DNA of 62,581 nt, counting the filler, from Syncephalis fuscata S228 (Eukaryota; Fungi; Zoopagomycota), in the NCBI GenBank assembly GCA_025786725.1. It is 4 parts of 4 records of this genome, joined end to end, with 100 filler letters (N's around TTAATTAATTAA, not from the genome) between each part and the next. Parts side by side here need not be neighbours in the genome. Positions count along the whole stretch, not along the records: positions 16,948 to 38,747 come from JAHLTZ010000150.1; 3 more parts are not named here. One strand, given 5' to 3'. Numbering within the stretch: position 1 is the first letter of the stretch; every line of letters begins with the position of its first letter. The translations under genes were made by a program, and so were the position numbers. The notes under the pieces were generated by a model. The model did not search any database. It was not told the origin of the DNA and saw only the letters and a program-made list of their open reading frames with translations. Shown piece by piece: positions 16,948 through 35,401 of the stretch.

Positions 16948-18291
16948 ACAATCCAAAGCATAACAGCATGTGTGTATTTGCAGGTTTATTAAACGCTATG
17001 TACAATGTTTTGTTTTCGTGCACTACTTTCGTTTAGCGTTATTGTTCTAGCTGCATCATCAATAGTTAGATCATTGATAAACTCAATCTAACATGGTATG
17101 ACAATAATAATTTGCTATAAGCTAAACCAGTAAGCCTTTGGGCTGCTAATTGTTTTTCCATTGGCTTCTGCTTTGGCTTGTTCTTCTACATTCTATCTTG
17201 CTTAACTTGGCAGGATTGGTTTCAGAAATGTAAGCAGCACTTAGGCCTTGGATGATCATCAATTGATATGCAATCCGCCGTCATTATGCACCTAAAATTG
17301 CTGGTACTTGGTTAGTACTTTTTTTGTGTCTATTCTAGTGTCTGCATATTGTATTGCGTGTGGTTTAGCCGATCCAATCTAGTTTACAACTGAAAAGTGA
17401 TGACGAAAATGACATGTTGAAACGTTTCATTGCTCAAAATGCTGTGATGCATTATGGTACAAACAATACTTATTGTATAGTTGCTTTCAGTTGATTTAGA
17501 TTAACCGCCATTTGAATGATGGTGGTTGCACAGCATGTAGCATGATATGCCTGGATGTAATATATTTGTGAATTCAAAGCAATGATTACCCCATAATAGT
17601 GAGCATAGTGTCAAATGAAATGCACGCATGTACCAATCAACACACTTTATAATCTAGAAATTACGGCTGACCTATGTATAGCAGTAAAAACCTGTATAGA
17701 ATACCAGTTTGATACATTAAACTTGTTTTTGCATCAGTGTTGTGTGCTATTCTGTATGCATGTAGATATTGAAGACCGAGTCGATAGAAATGACAGCAAA
17801 TACATCGTTATCGTTTTTATAAAGCAAGCAATATACTTGTTTTTACCAAATAGTTAGACCGTATAACAAATAATACAGACTAATGTATCTATTTGTGTCG
17901 CATATGTATTGGATTATTACCATTACCGTTACTTATGCAAATGACTGGCAGATTGAAATAAAGACCGTGCAAGTTAAAATCAAGACTGGTCAGGTTGAAA
18001 TCAAGGCGAGAAGCATCCTATTACACCATGAAACTATTGGTACATGCACGCCGCAAACCATTAGTTCGATTGATTTATTGGTTCATATTACACATCAATG
18101 GTGTACCTCATACTACAGTATACTAGCATCCCAGTATAGTCATAAATATAAATAGCCCACAAAATATGCACAATCAATTGCAATATCATTATCACACTCT
18201 ACTTCTTGCTATAAACGCACTACTCTCCACTTTATACCAACCGCACTCTACTATTCCTTTTATTTGTTTGTCTTAACAAATCGATATCACC

Positions 18292-21200
18292 ATGAAGCTT
18301 TCCATTGCTGTCGTTTGCACCATTGTCGTGGCTATCATGGCCAGTACAGCCATGGTGGATGCTAATCCAGCCATAGTTCGTCGTGATGGTATGTTGCAAT
18401 AATAGACATGTCACAGAATCATGCTTATTAACAGTATTTTTAAATAATAATTATAATAGCCAGTAGGTTGTGCTGCGTATTAACTGACTATTCGCTAACT
18501 ATATCACGTATTGTGTATCGATAACTTAACATTAATAGTTGGTGGGTTGTATTACATATCAATAGAGCATCTACTAATTATGTACCATGTACTGTGCCCA
18601 TTAATAACTTAATATTAGAGGATTGTAAGTTATATGTATATTAACTGATCACTTACTAATTGCATGTTATACACCATGTTTATCAATGACTTCATATCAA
18701 TAGGTCGTAGGTTGTATTGTATATCAATTGACTACTTACCAATTACATGCTATGCACCCTTTGCATCAACAACTTAATACTAATAGGTCGTAAGTAATAT
18801 TGTATATTGCTAACTTATAAATTAATTTCCATTTATTATTTGTATTAAAAACCTTATTAATAGGAGGTAGGTGGTACTCTATATTAACTGATCACTCACT
18901 AATCACATGTTATACACCATGTTTATCAATGGCTTCATATCAATAGGCCGTAAGTTATATTGTATATCAATTGATTACTCACTAATTATACGTTATGCAC
19001 CATGTGTATTAACAACTTAATATTAATAGGCGGTAAGTGGTATTGTATATTGACTGGCTTATAAATTAATTGTATAACATATATTATGTATATCAACAAC
19101 CTAATACCATAGCGGGTAAGTTGTATTGTGTATTACTTGACTATGTGCTAATTCTATGCCATGCGCTACGTATATCAACAACTTGATACTAATAGCATGT
19201 AAGTTATTGTATATTAATTAAACATTGGCTAATTATATATTATGTGCTGCGTATATCAACAACTAATGCTAATAGGTTGTAAGTTGTATTGTATGTTGAT
19301 GGCGTATAAACTAATTATATATCATGTATTGCGCACATTGATAACTTAATTCCATAGTTAGTAAGTTGTATTATATATTAATTGAGTATTAACTAATTAT
19401 ATATCATGTACTATGTGTATCAATAACTTAATATAATAGAAAGTAAGTGGCATTTTATATAAGCTAATTACTCACTGATTATATTCATGTACTGTATGTA
19501 TCAATTTAATATTAATAGAATGTAAGTTGTATTGTATATTATTTTTATTTTTATTTTGAAGAGCTTGTGAGCCCCCGCTGCGCATAATTAAAGAATTTGT
19601 GCTGCTTCCCACTATATTTGGACTTTTCCAAACTTTTAACGGGTGGACTGCCACGTTTTTGCGCAAAATCTGGTCCATATAGATTTTACACGGGGGCCAT
19701 CTTCTTTTAAATGGTGCTACACAGCACTATTCTCTTGAAGTTGGTCCCAATTGGGTTTTCCTCGACTATTCTGGCCAAGGTCTTGTTTCCGGACCTACTT
19801 ATTGGGTTCTGGTTTGCAATTTGTTAACTAGAGAAAACTGGGGGGGATTTTCCACTTAAGGATTGGTTCAAACTGAGGTTTGAATCCGAAGCCTTCAGCT
19901 CGGGAGACGCTGCCTTACCAACTGGGCTAGCAACGTCCCCTTGTATTGTATATTAACTGACTACTTACTAATTATATATTGTGTATTGTGTGTATCGATA
20001 ACTCAATATTAATAGGCGGTAAGTGGTAGTATATATTAATTGACTATACATTAACTATACTATTTACTGGTGGTATTAATTATTTAATATTAATAGCTTG
20101 TAAGTTGTATTGTATATTAACTATGTTATTTACTGCTTATACTAATTATTTAATATTAATAGATTGTAAGTAGTATTGTATATTAACTATGTTATTCGCT
20201 GATTATACTAATTATTTAATGTTAATAGATTGTAAGTTGCATTGTATATCAACTATTATTTACTAATTATACTAATTATTTAATATTAATAGTCTGTAAG
20301 TTGTATTGTATATTAACTGACTATACATTAACCATGCTATTTACTAATTATACTAATTATTTAATATTAATAGCTTGTAAGTTGTATTGTATATTAACTA
20401 ACTATGCATTAACCATGCTATTTACTGGTGGTATTAATTATTTAATATTAATAGTGCGTAAGTTGTATTGTATATTAACTATGTTATTCACTGATTATAT
20501 TAATTATTTAATATTAATAGGGTGTAAGTGGCATTGTATATTAACTAACTATACATTAACCATACTATTTACTGGTGGTATTAATTATTTAATATTAATA
20601 GCCTGTAAGTTGTATTGTATATTAACTATGTTATTCACTGATTATGCTAATTATATAATATTAATAGGCAGTAAGTTGTATTGTATATTAACTAACTATA
20701 CATTAACTATGTTATTTACTTATTATACTATTATTTAATACTAATAGATGGTAAGTGATATTGCATATTAACTGACTATACATTAACTATGTTATTTACT
20801 GATAATATTAATTATTTAATATTAATAGCGGGTAGGTGTTATTGTATATTATTTAAATATACATTAACTATGTTATTTACTAATTATACCAATTATTTAA
20901 TGTTAATAGAGTGTAAGTTGTATTATATATTGACCATGCTATTTACTGATTATACCAATTATTTAATGCTAATAGGCGGTAAGTTTATTATATATTAATT
21001 AATTACTAATTGTATTAATTATTTAATATTAATAGATTGTAAGTTGTATTGTATATCAACTATGTTATTTACTGCTTATACTAATTATTTAATATTAATA
21101 GCTTGTAAGTTGTATTGTATATTAATTATGTTATTTACTGATTATACTAATTATTTAATATTAATAGATTGTAAGCAGTATTGTATATCAACTAACTATA

Positions 21201-21644
21201 CATTAACTATGTTATTTACTGGTTATACTAATTATTTAATATTAATAGGGCGTAAGTTGTATTGTGTATTAACTGACTATACATTAACCATGCTATTTAC
21301 TGGTGATATTAATTATTTAATACTAATAGGCAGTAAGTAGTATTTTATATTAACTGACATACATTAACTATGTTATTTACCGACTATACCAATATTCAAT
21401 ATTAATAGTATGTAAGTAGTATTATATATTAACTGACTGCATTAATTATACTATTTACTGATTATACTAATTATTTAATGCTAATAGGCCGTAAGTAGTA
21501 TTGTATATTAACTGACTGCATTAATTATACTATTTACTGATTATACTAATTATTTAATGCTAATAGGCCGTAAGTAGCACTGTATATTGATGTCTTATAT
21601 GTTAATTATATGACATATAATATCTATTTGTAAATACAGCATAA
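18292..21644 (+). CDS. 38-exon micro-exon gene for a secreted cysteine-rich peptide precursor (70 aa): MKLSIAVVCTIVVAIMASTAMVDANPAIVRR-DAIEDCRRGRAACFKKCAYYFSLRSCNAECDSYWRICRP
   Basis: Exon 1 18292-18388. Micro-exons (start:sequence) 18460 CCA, 18539 TTG, 18619 AGGATT, 18704 GTC, 18787 GTC, 18864 GAG, 18947 GCC, 19030 GCG, 19113 CGG, 19196 CAT, 19276 GTT, 19358 TTA, 19440 AAA, 19519 AAT, 20016 GCG, 20097 CTT, 20163 ATT, 20229 ATT, 20293 TCT, 20374 CTT, 20455 TGC, 20521 GGT, 20602 CCT, 20668 GCA, 20748 ATG, 20829 CGG, 20910 AGT, 20976 GCG, 21036 ATT, 21102 CTT, 21168 ATT, 21249 GGC, 21330 GCA, 21409 TAT, 21488 GCC, 21567 GCC. Last exon 21640 CA-TAA. Each micro-exon is preceded by TAG and followed by GTAAGT, GTAGGT, GTGGGT or GTAAGC. 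No in-frame stop; symmetric 6-Cys pattern. Confidence 0.85.
18450..21590 (+). repeat. Tandem array of ~60-85 bp units, each one intron plus one micro-exon
   Basis: Consensus GTAAGTTGTATTGTATATTAACT...ACTAATTATTTAATATTAATAG-NNN; periods mostly 79-83 or 66 bp. Confidence 0.95.
19542..19940 (-). mobile_element. tRNA-derived SINE (~400 bp) with 15-bp target-site duplication, antisense in intron 15 of the micro-exon gene
   Basis: TSD TTGTATTGTATATTA at 19527-19541 and 19941-19955. Minus-strand head GGGGACGTTGCTAGCCCAGTTGGTAAGGC... has an A box (TAGCCCAGTTGG) and a B-box-like GGATTCAAACC; 3' tail AAAATAAAAATAAAAA. Removing 414 bp restores the 83-bp unit period. Confidence 0.8.
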
Positions 21645-22804
21645 TCAATGGTTGCAAGACATTAGCATTAATAGTGCAATCAAATCACTATTCCAATACA
21701 CTTTAGGTATATATTCGGTGAAAAGCAAGACCATTTGACAACTACGCCGTCCTGTCTATCCATATAAGTTTTGGCCAATGCTCCGGTTTATCCAGTTTTT
21801 AATTAATGGAATCATTATTTTATCAACAAGCTTGCATTTAGCTGTTTTTATTCAACTGTGCAGGCATATAGTAATAGACTTGTGGTTTCATCTTAACTGT
21901 ATACAATCAAATTGCTATATCAATAACCATGTTTTATTTGCATCCAATAATGGCAATTATTGATCAAATAGTTAAATTAACAAAAGACATGCACAATTAT
22001 ATTTTATTAGCCATAAGCATAGGATGGTATGAATATGGTAATGTTAAATATGGATATTGTAATGATAAATGTTGGCAATAAAGTTGGCTGTGCTTATTTT
22101 TAAATATACCATGGATAGTAACAAATCTATCACTATCATATAAGAAAATGATATTGTACCAATATTGATATAGAATAAGCATCGATTGCTAACAACTTGG
22201 CACTACATTGTGACGACTAGCAACTTAATGGCTACCGTCTTGTTTACGCTTACTTCTATCATCCAAGCATTAGTGGCTACTAATTAATTGCTTAATATAA
22301 CATGAACCGATGTTATTATAAAATAAACAATAAATGATTTTCCTTTTAATTATTGATTACCATAGTTAAGCTTTTAATAACTAAATAACATTTGTAACTA
22401 AAGCAGAAAAAAGAATACAGCACCAAAGATATAGATGTGTATTATAATTCCAATAAAGCTAGTGTTTTATAGTATATACTGTTGTTAATAGAATTGAACT
22501 TTGTCCATAAGGTTGCTTATATGTCAGTAGATAACAAGTATTTACTGGTTATGTCCTTGTATAAATGTTTGTTTATGATTGTTAGTACTAGTATTTAGTA
22601 TATTGTTGCTGTGGCTATTTATATGTTATCATTGGCATATTGTTTAATTACATAGTGGACTTTATGGATCAATTTCATGGTAGATAATTACGCGACCATA
22701 ATACTGTAATTCGGTGCCGTAAAAATGTAATATTTATATATTTTTAATAACTATGGCCATTATAAAGATGTAATGTGTTTGTTTCTAACAATCAAGCTAT
22801 TCCA

Positions 22805-24779: not shown

Positions 24780-27512
24780 TTAGTAAGCGCCGGTGTAACC
24801 ATAGCTGGTGCTAGGATAGGAGTTGTAACCGCCGTTAGCTGGTGCAGATACCGGAGCTGGCGCATTTGGGTAGGCGTTATGCGAAGCTGGAGCTGGAGTG
24901 TCTGGGTAGGCATTGTGAGAAGCTGGAGTGGTTGAAGCAGCTGGAGCTGGAGTCACTGGAGTGTATGAAGAGTGAGGGGCTGAAGTGACTGGAGCTGGAG
25001 TATCTGGGTAGGCGTTATACGAAGCTGGAGTGGTTGAGGTAGCTGGTGCTGGAGTTACTGGAGTGTATGAAGAATGAGGGGTTGAAGTGGCTGATGCTGG
25101 AGTAGTTGAAGTGGCTGGTGCTGGAGTCGCTGGAGTGTAAGAAGCTGGAGGGGCTGAAGTGGCGTGGGTCTCATTGTGGAAAGGAATGTGACCGCTGCAC
25201 TTGGAGCCGGAGCCAGTACCGGTGCAGGTAGATGGAGCTGGAGTGGATGGAGTGGTAGTTTTACCGCAGCTAGTACCGGTGCAGGTAGATGGAGTTGGGA
25301 CAACTGGGGTGGATGGAGTAGTTGGGACATATCCGCCATAGGTGTCGTTACCAGCTGGAGTGGATGGAGTGGTAGTCTTACCGCAGCTAGTACCGGTGCA
25401 GGTAGATGGAGCTGAAGCAGATGGGGTGGATGGAGTAGTTGGTACATATCCGCCATAGGTGTCGTGACCAGCTGGAGCTGGAGTTGAGACGACTGGAGCT
25501 GGAGTGTCAGGGTAGGCGTTATGAGGAGCTGGAGCAGATGGGGTAGTTGGTACATATCCGCCATAGGTGTCGTGACCAGCTGGAGCTGGAGTTGGGACGA
25601 CTGGAGCTGGAGTGTCAGGGTAGACGTTATGAGGAGCTGGGCTAACTGGAGTGGATGGAGTAGTTGGGACATATCCGCCATAGGTGTCGCTGCCAGATGG
25701 GACTGGGGCTGAAGTGGATGGCGTGGTGTAAGTCTCATGACCGGATGGGACCTGTGGCTTAGCTGGAACATAACCAAATGGAGCTGGTACACAAGTGCAG
25801 ATCTGGTGGGTTGATGGAATATAGATAGGAGCTGGAGCAGATGGAACGACATAAGTGTTGTTACCAGATGAGACTGGAGCTGGAGCAGATGGGACATATC
25901 CGCCATAGGTGTCGTTACCAGCTGGAGCTGAGACAACTGGAGTGGATGGGATGGTTGGTACATATTCGCCATAAGTATCGTGACCAGCTGGAGTTGGAGC
26001 TGGGACTATTGGGGTAGATGGAGTAGTTGGGACATATCCGCCATAGGTGTCGCTGCCAGATGGAGCTGGAGCTGAAACTACTGGAGCTGGAGCAGATGGG
26101 ACATATCCACCATAGGTGTCGTTACCAGATGGAGTTGGAACGGTAGTTTTACCGCAGCTAGTACCGGTGCAGGTAGATGGAGCAGATGGGACATTACCGC
26201 CATAAGTGCTGTTGTCGTGATCACCTGAAGCTGGAGTAGCTGGTGCGGTCTTGTTGCATGGAGCCTTTGGAGTTGGAATGTCATCAGTGTCATTGCCAGC
26301 TGGAGTTGAAGCTGGAACAGATGGAACTGGAGTGGTAGTCTTACCGCAGCTAGTACCGGTGCAGGTAGATGGAGCTGGAGCAGATGGGACATTACCGCCA
26401 TAAGTGTCGTTACCAGATGGAGTTGGAACGGTTGTTTTACCGCAGCTAGTACCGGTGCAGGTAGATGGAGCTGGAGCAGATGGGACATTACCGCCATAAG
26501 TGCTGTTGTCGTGATCACCTGAAGCTGGAGTAGCTGGTGCGGTCTTGTTGCATGGAGCCTTTGGAGTTGGAATGTCATCAGTGTCATTGCCAGCTGGAGT
26601 TGAAGCTGGAACAGATGGAACTGGAGTGGTAGTCTTACCGCAGCTAATACCGGTGCAGGTAGATGGAGCTGGAGCAGATGGGACATTACCGCCATAAGTG
26701 CTGTTGTCGTGATCACCTGAAGCTGGAGTAGCTGGTGCGGTCTTGTTGCATGGAGCCTTTGGAGTTGGAATGTCATCAGTGTCATTGCCGGCTGGAGTTG
26801 AAGCTGGAACAGATGGAACTGGAGTGGTAGTCTTACCGCAGCTAGTACCGGTGCAGGTAGATGGAGCTGGAGCAGATGGGACATTACCGCCATAAGTGCT
26901 GTTGTCGTGATCACCTGAAGCTGGAGTAGCTGGTGCGGTCTTGTTGCATGGGGCCTTTGGAGCTGGGGCATCATAAACATCATCGCCAGCTGGAGTTGGG
27001 ACTGGAGCTGATGGAGTCTCATTGTATTCACCACCTGGAGTTGGAGTATCATGGTACTCACCACCTGGAGCTGGTGCTGATGGAGTCTCATCGTATTCAC
27101 CACCTGGAGTTGGAGTATCATGGTATTCACCACCTGGAGCTGGAGCTGATGGAGTATCATGGTATTCACCACCTGGAGCTGGAGCTGATGGAGTATCATG
27201 GTATTCACCACCTGGAGTTGATGGAATCGATGGAACATTTGATTCAGGTGCTCTGGCTCTGCACTTGAACACGCTGCAGCAAATAGGATGCTTGGTGTTG
27301 CACTTGACATTTTGGGTGGTCGTGTGCTTTGGTGTAGTAGTGCACGTACCATCAACACGCTTTAGATTACCGTTAACAGTGCCGCAGTGGTGGGCACCAT
27401 TGTAGCAATGGAAAGTAGCGGTACCACAGCCATCGCTGATGATTCCGGGGCTAGCAATGACGCTCTGGGCGGCAAGGATAAGAGCAGCAGACAAAATAAA
27501 AGCACCCTTCAT
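24780..27512 (-). CDS. Secreted Pro/Thr/Ser/Gly-rich repeat protein with a small Cys-rich N-terminal domain, 910 aa
   Basis: Signal peptide MKGAFILSAALILAAQSVIA; 8-Cys N-terminal segment; repeats GGEYHDTP, STCTGTSCGKTT and HDTYGGYVP. Confidence 0.85.
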   Translation of the reverse strand: MKGAFILSAALILAAQSVIASPGIISDGCGTATFHCYNGAHHCGTVNGNLKRVDGTCTTTPKHTTTQNVKCNTKHPICCSVFKCRARAPESNVPSIPSTPGGEYHDTPSAPAPGGEYHDTPSAPAPGGEYHDTPTPGGEYDETPSAPAPGGEYHDTPTPGGEYNETPSAPVPTPAGDDVYDAPAPKAPCNKTAPATPASGDHDNSTYGGNVPSAPAPSTCTGTSCGKTTTPVPSVPASTPAGNDTDDIPTPKAPCNKTAPATPASGDHDNSTYGGNVPSAPAPSTCTGISCGKTTTPVPSVPASTPAGNDTDDIPTPKAPCNKTAPATPASGDHDNSTYGGNVPSAPAPSTCTGTSCGKTTVPTPSGNDTYGGNVPSAPAPSTCTGTSCGKTTTPVPSVPASTPAGNDTDDIPTPKAPCNKTAPATPASGDHDNSTYGGNVPSAPSTCTGTSCGKTTVPTPSGNDTYGGYVPSAPAPVVSAPAPSGSDTYGGYVPTTPSTPIVPAPTPAGHDTYGEYVPTIPSTPVVSAPAGNDTYGGYVPSAPAPVSSGNNTYVVPSAPAPIYIPSTHQICTCVPAPFGYVPAKPQVPSGHETYTTPSTSAPVPSGSDTYGGYVPTTPSTPVSPAPHNVYPDTPAPVVPTPAPAGHDTYGGYVPTTPSAPAPHNAYPDTPAPVVSTPAPAGHDTYGGYVPTTPSTPSASAPSTCTGTSCGKTTTPSTPAGNDTYGGYVPTTPSTPVVPTPSTCTGTSCGKTTTPSTPAPSTCTGTGSGSKCSGHIPFHNETHATSAPPASYTPATPAPATSTTPASATSTPHSSYTPVTPAPATSTTPASYNAYPDTPAPVTSAPHSSYTPVTPAPAASTTPASHNAYPDTPAPASHNAYPNAPAPVSAPANGGYNSYPSTSYGYTGAY

Positions 27513-29029: not shown

Positions 29030-31107
29030 ATGTATTATTTTAAAATCACAGCAGCATTAATTTTATTATTAATGCAGTTGAATGAAGTCCCAAATGCTAC
29101 ATTAGGATGATCAGCCTTATCAGCTCTGTGTTATAATAAAACAGCAATAACAACAGCCGATACATCAGATAATTATGTTAAACAAAACATACCACGCTTA
29201 GTTAAACGTTTTACTCAAAAATTAAAACAAAGAACTGTTGCACAGGATTATAAAATCATTGGATTTGGAATGGCACCAACCATAAAATATCTGAAAACCA
29301 ACAGTTTGGTAAGTCCCATGGTACCACATGCATCTACTGGTGTAGATACTATGCATCGCCAAGGTGTAATGGGCAAAGGAGTTAAAATAGCCATTATAGA
29401 TAGTGGCGTCGATTATTTACATCCAGCGCTTGGGGGCGCATTTGGTCCTAATCACAAGGTGGCTTTTGGCTATGACTTTGTTGGTGACAGCTATGGCGAC
29501 ACGGGTGTTGCCGCCGCAAAAAAAGATCCTATGGATTGCATGGGCCACGGTACACGTATAGCCGGTATAGTTGCAGCAAACACAGCTACATTTGTTGGAG
29601 TAGCACCTGAGGCGAAACTTGGGCCTATTGCATAATTGGTTGCAGATTTGCGCCTGCTTCCATGTCAATTATAAAACAGGCATTCGACATGGCAGACACG
29701 GACGGCATGCATATTATTAATATTTCATTCAGCAATTATCTGGGCAACAATGGAGCACTTTTGTCTAGTTTTGTGGAGCAATACACTCAGCGAGGAATCA
29801 TTATTACTGCGTCGACTGGTAATATACGACAAATGCAGAAAATAACGTGGACTTCTAATGTACCGAGTATTGCGCCATCTGTAATTTCAGTTGGTTCCAT
29901 GGATATACCGTACATTATATCCGATTCGTTTAAAGCTGTTGGCCTTGGCACGGATGCTATTATGTACAAAAACATTTGCTTTAATATTCAACTGTTATTA
30001 AGAGAATATGATGTGATTACAATGCATTATTCAGAATATCCAGATCAATGTACCATTCCAAATAATGCAAATGGCAAGATAGTCTGGATGCCATATGATG
30101 GATGCGATATTAGTCGTTTATTTAAAAATATGAAAAATAGTGGCGTTGTCGGTAGTATAATTTTAAATTCTGACAAAAAATACAACAATTGTTTAGTTCC
30201 AGCTATTTCTGTTGGTAATCAGTTTGCCAAGATTGCTTCAGAATTGATTGCAAAAGGACAATCACTCAGACTTGGGTTCTATGGACACAAATCTCACGTT
30301 CCAGATACAAGCAGTATCTCGGGCTCTATTTCTGCAGCCTGGGGGCCATCGTTAGACCTTGGAATGAATCCAGATATTATGGCGCCCGGCGTAGCAATGT
30401 TTACAACTACAAATAAGGCTGAGAAATTTCAGATTGATCGTGGTACATCATTTGCAGCGCCTTATGTGGCAGGTGTGGCCGCGCTCTATCTTCAGGCACA
30501 TGCCAGTGCAGACGATAATATTAAGCGATTTAATCCAGTAGAATTTAAGAAGACTATCCAAAGTACGGCAATACCTTGCATAATGCCACATACACAGCTT
30601 GCTGGATCGGTGGCTCAGCAAGGCGCTGGGCTTGTTTGTATCGATCGAGCCATGTTGGTCTCATTTACTGTGTCGCCCTCGGTGATAGAGCTTGGAGATA
30701 GGCAGACAAAGGCCATGTATCAGGATGGAAAACTAAGTCGGATAACTATTTATAATCCAGCATCTGTTGTAAAAACATTTACCACTACTCATTTACCTGC
30801 CGTATCAATGCGTGGATTTGATAGCAATGGTAAGGAGTTCAGGCCACCACAGATTTGTGAGATACATGCAAAAGCTATTTTTTCCAAATATACATCGGTA
30901 GAACCAGAGACATCAGTGTCGATTAGCATTAAATTCGACATACCGCTTTTACGTGCCTACAAAGACCACTGGCTTTACTCTGGTTATATTATCGTCGATC
31001 CAGATCACAAACCAAACCGCCCATCTTCAAGCCAGGCTATTTATATACCTTATTTTGGGCTTAATGGTAGCATAAACAATATTAGAAAAATGGTTAAACA
31101 GCCGTAA
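29030..31107 (+). pseudogene. S8 subtilisin-like serine protease (PA/Fn3-like C-terminus), disrupted
   Basis: Catalytic triad motifs IIDSG, HGTRIAG and GTSFAAP. A 1-nt deletion at ~29621-29624 breaks KLG-AYCIIGC (family consensus LGAYRVFGC). The signal-peptide-like start at 29030 (MYYFKITAALIFIINAVE) is followed by TGA and further stops. Confidence 0.75.
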
Positions 31108-31848
31108 TATATGCTACTTTAAACATAACATTTAATGTTACTATACAAAAACAGCTATATTAACACAAACAATGTTTGTAAAATATTTTATACTAAATAT
31201 GTAGATATACTATAAATTACATTTATTTATTTAAAAAATGTTCATTTATTTAGTAAATGTTAAATACGTAATTACACATAGTACATTATTTGTATAATAA
31301 TAGTTTATTGTATGGATGCATAAGTCGCCATAGTATATTATTATGTATACTAATAATAAGTAATTTGCTACATTGTATACTTGTTGCATTTTTTCAAAAT
31401 AGTGCCAAATACTTGTGCAACAAAATGGTCAATCAATCATCAGTTAAACAAACACATAGACACTTAATTGTCAGCACACAACAAACAACACAGCTATGTT
31501 ATCATTTGCTTTTTACTATTTTGGATCAAATAAATTTAACTTGAATACAATTAACTAATCATAGCATAAATAGTGACAACATCATTTAACTAGCATTTTG
31601 CTTTTATCCTATGTCTTACCACAATCATATCGCAGCAATATAATATTACCTAATATATAAATAATACTTGTTTATTTAAATAATAAACAATTAATTTATA
31701 TTAAATACATTTAAAATATACTTTTAAACAGCAAAAAACAACACTGCAGCTTGCAACAGACTACGCTGCACCGCTAGCCATCTAGTTAGTTAGCAAAATA
31801 AACAAAATTTTAGCAAAAATAAATCCAGTGCGCTGGCTGGCAAAAGGT

Positions 31849-31923
31849 TGCTCACTACAGGGATCGAACCTGTGACCTTGGCGTTATTAGCACCACGCTC
31901 TAAACCAACTGAGCTAAGCGAGC
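31849..31923 (-). tRNA. tRNA-Ile (AAT)
   Basis: GCTCGCTTAGCTCAGTTGGTTTAGAGCGTGGTGCTAATAACGCCAAGGTCACAGGTTCGATCCCTGTAGTGAGCA folds to a cloverleaf; anticodon AAT; T4 run downstream. Confidence 0.95.
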
Positions 31924-31930
31924 CGATAGA

Positions 31931-32048
31931 AACTACATTACTTCTCATTCCCGCGTGGTCCCCCACCGCAGTACTACAGAAGCGCGGCCTAACTTAACTT
32001 CGGAGATCGGACGGGATCCGGTGCTTTCTAGGCGCAATGAACGTAGTT
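31931..32048 (-). rRNA. 5S rRNA (dispersed copy)
   Basis: 118 nt with paired ends AACTAC...GTAGTT; conserved GAAAGCACCGGATCCCGTCCGATCTCCGAAGTTAAG and AGTACT..GTGGGGGACCACGCGGGAA motifs. Confidence 0.92.
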
Positions 32049-33104
32049 GAAGTGGAGGCATTTTTTTGCTAGCCATTCGTAATTTTAATTTACGTAAAAG
32101 CTTGCTGCAAATGTTATTTAGACACATGCACACATTCAATATTACACCATACATCAAATAAAACGCATACGCACAACAATAATAGCAACTATAAATACAG
32201 TACATATAATAGGCATATAATAGTGATAGTAGTACATGTCTGTAATCATTAGTATAGTTATTATCATAGCTACTATCATATCAGCACAGTATAATAAAAA
32301 TCATACCAATAAAGCAATGAGCAACAACAAGGGCATTTATAAGCAGTGTGTAATGCATATATAACTATAGAATACAAATACTGTTTGCTAGTATATGTAT
32401 ACTGCTACTCGATAGTTGTAGCAGATGAAAAAGCAGCACAGTACATTAGACGATAAGTTTAATCAACAATAGGAAAGCATATAGTGTAGATGACTAGCAT
32501 GCATGCAGGCTGTATACTGTAAACAAGAGGATTGTGTTTAATGTAGGTGATAACAGCAAAGCAAGCAAGAGAATACAAGCGATAGAAAAGACAGACTCAG
32601 ATGTGGCACATAGATAGTGGGTGTACTTACTATTATAGCTATATGTGGGATTGTAAAGAATAAAGAATACAGATTGCAAGTAAAAATAGAAAGAAAGAGC
32701 GTGATAGGTAAGTAATGGAATATGAGCAAGTGTAGTGCATACAATTTATGCTGTATAGAGATGAGTGCAGCTATCAGCACCATCATTGCACTGGTGTTAG
32801 CAAAGTTGAATAGCGTGCGGCTATTGTATAATAATGAAACGATAAATAATAGAATGAATAAACAGAGAAGGTGCGATTAGCTATGTTAATGAGCATATAT
32901 GCAAGATCAATGAGCGGAATCAGTCGACGTTTATTAATAATAAGGCTAAAACAAAAATAAAAATAGTCTTGGATAGAGAAAGGCTAGACGAGTATAGAAT
33001 GATATAGAATAACATGAATATACAATGGGAAGAGTATGATAAGTGGTGTTGAGGTTATAATGCATATAACAAAATGAGTGAATTAAACAAAGTATATTGG
33101 AATA

Positions 33105-33320
33105 TACAAACGATAGAATGTGTCTAGTATATCGTAGAATAATACATATTAGTATGGGACAGAATGGAAATGATATAGGTGAATAGAAAGTATATATGTA
33201 TACTAAATATATGCATACTGGATAACGAATCTATGATGATGAGATTTAATGATTGATGTAACTCACCGCCTATCATCATGTTCAATAGATTGGGCGTTAT
33301 TGAATATTAGTTATTTGACC
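33105..33320 (+). repeat. Dispersed repeat, homologous to 40515-40707, 43399-43590 (inverted) and 57322-57510 (inverted)
   Basis: Shared ATATATGCATACTGGATAA..CTCACCGCC.ATCATCATGTTCAATAG..ATTTGACC. Confidence 0.75.
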
Positions 33321-33909
33321 ATTAATCATACTAAATAGTTAACAAATTACCTATTTATTTATAATAATGTTAAATGACCTATAATATGTTATATGATTAA
33401 CGCTAAGCGATAATTAATCAGCCTATATAATTTACAGTAATCGCTTTTAAAAACCATCTCATTATAAATAAATATTAATATATATATAAATACATACAAA
33501 CATGCAAACAAATATACCAGTAACAATAAATTGAACATACATTATGAATAAATGATCAGTAATATAACTAAATACAAATCTACGTGGATCATAAAAGTAT
33601 AATCGGTGCTATTTGTAATGGCATTAATGGTATCTAGATTACCACATCGTTAGTAGTATATAGTATTGCTCTATTCATAGCGCTAGATAGTAGTGGCACA
33701 TCTGGACAATACACGGTTAATTACATTATTCACCAACCACCACATTAGTAGCAAATACACCAGCTCATATAATACACAACAATCATTATAAGCACATTGT
33801 TTGTAGTGAAGAAGAAGCGTGCGCTAAATCATTTAATCGTTGAAGCAACATAACAGCCAGTACGATAAAGTAATATCCACACCCATATATATACTTGTAG
33901 ATACGACAA

Positions 33910-35401
<1,492 letters not shown>

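Follow-up and report, generated by a model that had tools for sequence, protein, structure and literature searches.

The window analysed here (the whole stretch of 62,581 nucleotides, filler included, from Syncephalis fuscata S228) very probably contains a genuine gene whose one-codon exons are spliced constitutively; the genome has about 150 genes of this kind. A first-pass annotation had proposed that this locus is spliced to encode a secreted peptide rich in Cys. This proposal is supported by the reading frame and the Cys statistics of the family, as well as by a genome-wide constraint on exon length, and is further backed by intronless paralogues, a second species and the expression of the family; the micro-exon splicing itself we infer from the sequence. 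Both the family and the element inserted in one of the introns were absent from that annotation.

The array gene in the window

The parse of the window sequence agreed with the layout proposed earlier: the region 18292-21644 consists of a signal-peptide exon, 36 internal exons (35 of them 3 nt long) and a stop exon, separated by 37 introns, all of them in phase 1 (Table 1). Each of the 37 introns starts with GT and ends with AG; 36 are 57-80 nt long, and the remaining one (19522-20015) reaches 494 nt because an inserted element is situated there. The joined exons had been claimed to give a frame without internal stops, and the 213 coding nt indeed form 70 open codons followed by a stop codon. 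The translation of exon 1 has a hydrophobic N-terminus and an Arg-Arg pair (secretion is predicted by sequence reading), and the Arg-Arg at the end of the propeptide would be a Kex2-type site.

Table 1. Coordinates of the array gene and the associated features in the window.
Feature	Position	Strand	Remarks
TATA-like box, putative promoter element	18147..18154	+	read from the sequence; upstream of the array gene
Exon 1	18292..18388	+	97 nt, ends in phase 1, donor GTATGT; hydrophobic signal peptide, short propeptide, first mature residue
Tandem array	18389..21639	+	37 phase-1 introns and 36 micro-exons coding for the mature peptide
3-nt exon starts, first half	18460, 18539, 18704, 18787, 18864, 18947, 19030, 19113, 19196, 19276, 19358, 19440, 19519, 20016, 20097, 20163, 20229, 20293	+	
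3-nt exon starts, second half	20374, 20455, 20521, 20602, 20668, 20748, 20829, 20910, 20976, 21036, 21102, 21168, 21249, 21330, 21409, 21488, 21567	+	
Sole 6-nt exon	18619..18624	+	third micro-exon; a 6-nt exon has the same rank in most paralogues
SINE-like insertion	19542..19940	-	399 nt; lies antisense within intron 15, with a poly(A) tail and a tRNA-like head
Last coding exon	21640..21644	+	5 nt: two bases finishing the final codon, then the stop
3' UTR	21645..21810	+	end approximate; common to the family including the intronless members; 220 candidates in the genome

Across the units, the entropy per position is 0 bits at ATAG and GT and approximately 1.9 bits at the three exon positions. 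The mature region contains six Cys with the spacing 6-3-8-3-6, the codon of each Cys being divided by a junction. When the order of the exons was shuffled (n = 200,000), the lack of stops together with at least six Cys and mirror spacing had a frequency of 1.05e-4, and the lack of stops alone, 0.049. A branch-point-like motif had been described as usual in the units; CTRAY is indeed present in 34 of the 37 introns, but taken alone it is weak evidence, as the distances are scattered and the DNA is AT-rich. The intron units are 66-99% alike, with the likeness dropping as the distance increases, and units 35 and 36 are 99% identical. The terminal intron and its acceptor also close 21 of the 22 parsed arrays. 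The 5' flank of the gene is common to 281 candidate places in the genome, and in one probable RNA run the depth climbs in the bin starting at 18194, near the TATA-like box.

As anticipated for gene predictors, this structure escaped the public annotation: models P0003 and P0008 run through the array introns. Unspliced ORFs within the array were dismissed as repeat read-through.

Elsewhere in the window there is a secreted-looking ORF of 910 aa (24780-27512, minus strand), repetitive and Pro/Thr/Ser-rich, with Cys-containing repeats and no Pfam match, and a subtilisin (S8) with an Fn3-like domain (29270-31107, plus strand) in two frames, with a break near 29635-29662 (an intron, a frameshift or a pseudogene). 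An actin gene (33910-35401, minus strand) has two ordinary introns unrelated to those of the array. In 31817-33400, a 5S rRNA gene (31930-32048, minus strand), followed directly by tRNA-Ile (31849-31923, minus strand), lies at the edge of a 1.5-kb repeat, possibly a mobile element, with 927 candidate places of 71-80% identity. In the segment 16948-24512, the contig is 99.8% identical to paralogue L036 from the contig start to the SINE site and 95% identical to L037 downstream. It could be either another haplotype of a duplication on contig C2 (L036, L037) or its third segmental copy.

The family and its coding sequence

In the S. fuscata genome (29.36 Mb, 371 contigs), the scan for tandem 3-nt units that had been suggested yielded 2,420 matches of two adjacent units (the 3+3 pattern) versus none in the reversed control. 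With the first exon of the pair changed, the number of matches fell to 14 (2+3) and 1 (4+3), and 2+2 gave none. Single 3-nt units numbered 5,258 versus 738 in the control, approximately 4,500 above background; since a gene has about 30 units, this excess gives a rough estimate of about 150 array genes. At least 150 homologues of exon 1 were scored among 323 candidates, about 80 of them with a short open frame, which marked an array in every inspected case.

We parsed 22 arrays. Strict PWM parsing missed real units and was replaced by a later parser, and three calls of 7-nt exons were corrected manually, before the statistics, to a 3-nt exon followed by the donor GTATGT. Among the 660 parsed exons, 622 (94%) have a length of 3 nt and another 32 a length of 6 nt, with 15-42 exons per gene. 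The introns (53-88 nt), unlike the exons, vary freely in length and fall in all three classes modulo 3.

In Pfam, no family was found for exon 1 or for the intronless mature peptides; the sole match, Gloverin (E 0.032), was weak and was disregarded. A profile of exon 1 and the intronless paralogues matches only S. fuscata proteins and one protein of S. pseudoplumigaleata. Four paralogues (L031, L044, L046 and L047) look broken, having a 2-nt exon, a lost acceptor or lost units, as a family evolving by birth and death would show. Two others (L033 and L034) belong to a subfamily without Cys; it has 15 micro-exons, one of which, 15 nt long, codes for a second dibasic site; by eye, the end of an RNA-run contig behind 18388 resembles this exon.

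The homologous arrays were checked for stops and Cys spacing, as had been proposed. In 13 non-redundant arrays (related and hence not fully independent) we observed no stops at the exon junctions versus 27.7±3.8 in shuffled order. Junction Cys (71 versus 37.5±4.2) and CX3C motifs (27 versus 2.5±1.6) are enriched in the same arrays. Due to the shared ancestry, the P-values of the shuffles overstate independence; without two block-sharing arrays, the numbers of stops are still 0 versus 23.1. Six Cys are present in 10 of the 13 arrays, eight in one, three in one incomplete array, and none in one subfamily. The description of six Cys, each built from two exons, is correct for the window gene, but their exact mirror symmetry is not a trait of the family, which conserves a CX3C..CX3C core, to which another Cys pair is added. 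The CX3C-Xn-CX3C core is 3-8-3 in the window gene and similar in most paralogues, with 4 or 5 instead of 3 in a few.

Several paralogues (L048, L049-L051 and L054) are intronless. They carry the 5' flank of the family (to at least 300 nt upstream where covered), exon 1 and the 3' UTR, with an uninterrupted six-Cys region of 33-38 codons in place of the array, so that their peptides equal those of the array genes in size, and form one branch (94/93) among the array genes in the midpoint-rooted tree. From this position, and from the presence of an array in the sister species, we infer that a cDNA step removed all of their introns; this in turn would mean that the array introns are spliced. The only peptide folded, that of the intronless L054, gave in AlphaFold a two-helix hairpin (helices 2-13 and 21-30, pLDDT 85), and the fold search with an intronless paralogue returned generic hairpins (best Z 3.8).

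In the second species, S. pseudoplumigaleata, the contig KZ990530.1 (L105) has a homologous phase-1 signal exon followed by 33 parsed 3-nt exons, with one further exon visible in a 164-nt gap. Its introns are GC-richer and diverged, and the phase-1 frame is open. Taken by itself, this array counts as weak evidence, the P value for the lack of stops being about 0.07, but between the two species the one-codon-exon layout has persisted longer than the sequence of the introns.

A real gene could also follow the model of the schistosome micro-exon genes (MEGs), its purpose being combinatorial exon skipping with many isoforms per locus. In Schistosoma mansoni, MEGs encode secreted proteins by a signal exon followed by frame-preserving micro-exons and are missed by automatic annotation; there are 35 such genes, with 10-20 exons mostly of 15 bp (range 6-81, or 3-81 by the abstract), introns of 0.1-5 kb, and alternative splicing (10.1101/2023.06.21.545858). 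The window gene is similar in that its coding region consists mostly of symmetric micro-exons, the signal exon comes first, the product is a predicted secreted one of a parasite, and annotation missed it; moreover, all exons are multiples of 3 in a single phase, and 35 of the 36 single-exon skips leave its frame open. However, junctions skipping one, two or three exons contain 32, 27 and 27 stops versus 26.8, 25.9 and 24.9 expected, which is the chance level, and the depletion is restricted to junctions of exon i with exon i+1. Therefore, selection acts on the product with every exon in order; and, as stops are not avoided at skip junctions, the splicing of the array genes looks constitutive, unlike that of the MEGs. 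Besides, nine single skips in the window gene remove a Cys and one truncates the peptide, whereas the Cys pattern fits only the product of all exons and is coded in full by the intronless copies. Thus, we consider skipping an unlikely purpose of the layout: the analogy with MEGs drawn in the first-pass annotation holds for the layout, and probably not for exon skipping as the main source of variation.

Variation, insertion and expression

Compared with L036 and L037, the window gene matches at 97-100% in introns 1-14, and its last 10 units match L037, while the middle block differs and is shorter, so that the loop changes from 14 to 8 residues. The pairs L043/L046, L031/L039 and L042/L053 also differ by whole units or blocks. 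Point substitution in close pairs is equal in exons (0.015) and introns (0.014), the counts being small, and hence there is no sign of faster point mutation in exons in these pairs. The whole-unit differences fit unequal crossover and gene conversion guided by the homology of the introns, in which codons are always transferred whole. The variation appears to stem from exchanges at the DNA level in which an intron travels together with its codon.

The sequence shows that each unit is one short spliceosomal intron with one phase-1 3-nt exon, so that two exons contribute to each mature codon. In the mechanism that we propose, the introns would be removed singly by intron definition, with every exon kept in order, and the prepropeptide would be secreted and cut at Arg-Arg, yielding a 39-residue helical hairpin with three disulfides. 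The introns, 70-99% alike and approximately 78 nt long, would allow unequal crossover or gene conversion, both within and between paralogues, to add, delete and swap codons in frame; the frame would stay intact because the exonic part of a unit is exactly as long as one codon. Recombination would then vary the loop length and the surface residues around a fixed Cys scaffold.

If, alternatively, the introns were inserted one by one by an introner-like transposon, the repeats would reflect a common mobile source, and the layout would be neutral, with no role in diversification. The introns are indeed related in sequence across the family, and active retroelements are present. This does not agree with the strict spacing of one intron per codon in a single phase, confined to the mature-peptide region, nor with neighbouring units being more alike than distant ones (units 35 and 36 being nearly identical), whole-unit indels between paralogues, and the unrelated actin introns in the same window. 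We regard this origin as quite improbable and retain the exchange of units.

The SINE-like element is flanked by a 15-nt target-site duplication (19527-19541 and 19941-19955). Its head was judged tRNA-like by eye, ARAGORN and Rfam giving no call. The genome has about 41 full copies with 86-97% identity, approximately 26 of them in genes of the family, all antisense; for these, a listed homologue of exon 1 lies 0.4-2.7 kb upstream on the same strand. The element occupies the same intron site, a few bases past the donor, in L031, L041 and L052; the near-identical L036 and L037 lack it, and the copy of L048 lies in unrelated AT-rich DNA. This suggests a site-preferring partner retroelement, or else spread by gene conversion.

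Expression was assessed in one run, tentatively taken as RNA and available in contig form, over 17900-22300 of the window, with the depth summed over all paralogues. The summed depth is 6e4-3e5 in exon 1 and 6e4-9e4 in the 3' UTR, and from 1e0 to less than 250 in the array, except for the inserted element, where it is high. Four contigs tie the end of exon 1 to the region of the last exon; the intervening letters are not given, and these contigs may stem from intronless paralogues. Among the contigs of this run, none was seen to carry a micro-exon junction. The family is probably expressed at a high level as short transcripts, for which the run does not separate array from intronless origin.

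It seems very improbable that the arrays code for nothing, being minisatellites or the remains of decay in one large intron, with the peptides coming from the intronless paralogues only: the tandem-repeat character, the lack of micro-exon junctions in the run, the broken copies and the pile-up of SINE insertions in arrays would agree with it, but it leaves unexplained the invariant AG and GT around a variable 3-nt core, the near absence of 2- and 4-nt cores, the zero stops and CX3C enrichment in the natural order only, and an array kept in a second species with diverged introns.

Similar arrays in other fungi and known systems

A metagenome scan for three adjacent 3-nt units produced 47 loci. 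About a dozen matches were rejected as CRISPR arrays with an invariant triplet (including L058, L064, L073, L074, L088, L089, L090, L095, L097, L098), and a few, as plain satellites; CRISPR repeats mimic the splice pattern and hence cause false matches in such scans. In soil contigs L100 (minus strand, from about 953 down) and L076 (6073-7190), a phase-0 signal exon is followed by 3-nt exons with clear branch points; further phase-0 soil arrays are L063, L066, L067, L069, L075, L080, L083, L091, L092, L099, L103 and L104, and the arrays of this group reach 49 units. In the soil arrays, 238 units have no stop when read in phase 0 and 29 stops when read in phase 1. They are unrelated in sequence to the Syncephalis family and, from the neighbouring ORFs, look to come from an ascomycete-like fungus.

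In AT-rich contigs L059 (90-1710) and L094, 17 to about 40 phase-1 units directly precede a kinase exon whose relatives are Funneliformis and Rhizophagus kinases (Glomeraceae-type), the array coding for Tyr/Asp/Asn-rich N-termini; other phase-1 arrays are L061, L065, L081, L085 and L102, and the introns of this group are about 90 nt long. The Glomeraceae-like arrays have one stop in phase 1 versus 5.5 in shuffled order (P 0.007). Both groups look real, and we treat them as leads. Contig L087 (minus strand) carries a further array of 18-20 units, Glu/Lys/Ala-rich and open when read in phase 0, with introns of 67 nt.

Tiny exons are known elsewhere. A long-read annotation of Coprinopsis cinerea includes 27 three-base exons in 26 genes (PMC12230235), and isolated exons of 1-3 nt are also listed for human MAP4K5 and Drosophila homothorax (PMC8632122, PMC7392893). 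Such cases demonstrate the splicing of 3-nt exons, fungi included; unlike C. cinerea, S. fuscata has thousands of them in runs of dozens. The fold may be compared with that of plant alpha-hairpinins, two antiparallel helices with a CXXXC motif in each (PMC7191063). The window gene shares the double motif, helix-loop-helix is predicted for the intronless L054 only, and for an intronless paralogue the top fold match is a tie that includes vicilin-buried peptide 10 (Z 3.8, rmsd 2.4, 34 aligned). However, alpha-hairpinins have four Cys and are of plant origin, whereas the S. fuscata peptides are fungal and usually have six; no sequence similarity was detected, and the Z value indicates a common fold only.

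Coding minisatellites and repeat-module effector genes vary by unequal recombination of in-frame units, the repeat itself being coding. In S. fuscata, by contrast, the homology for recombination is intronic, leaving the coding part of each unit a free codon. Compared with MEGs, S. fuscata differs in exon number and size, in short introns forming a tandem repeat, in the number of genes, and in the lack of a statistical sign of selection for skipping; no link in sequence to the schistosome MEG proteins came to light, the profile searches giving Syncephalis proteins only. No description of 3-nt exon runs or of Syncephalis micro-exons turned up in the literature searched (most subscription journals being outside it), in line with the initial claim of an undescribed architecture. 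We rate the layout as new and not a member of the MEGs, since it differs from them in the size of the exons, in the origin of the repeat and in the way variation apparently arises; a more cautious view would see in it a convergent and extreme form of the MEG layout.

On balance, we favour the view that the intron-plus-one-codon repeat is an overlooked general fungal architecture, a codon-level shuffling device, that would have arisen more than once: in phase 1 for the secreted hairpin peptides of Syncephalis, in phase 0 for the peptides secreted by a soil fungus resembling ascomycetes, and in phase 1 for Glomeraceae-like kinase N-termini, with the S. fuscata SINE targeting a fixed site of the intron unit. 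The hosts of Syncephalis are Mucorales, and with similar, middling confidence we suggest as a putative role a diversified effector or antimicrobial repertoire against the host or competing microbes, the effector role being a guess. The exchange of whole codons may be adaptive or neutral.

With 37 introns in 213 coding bases, the window gene is an extreme of exon size and intron density, and a case provided by nature for testing how dozens of 3-nt exons in a row are processed by the spliceosome with none being skipped. The layout would offer protein diversification codon by codon via recombination in introns. Syncephalis species are mycoparasites (PMC13188720), and here about 150 predicted secreted peptides, probably highly expressed, are misread by current gene models; similar hidden genes are suggested in other fungi, including arbuscular mycorrhizal ones.
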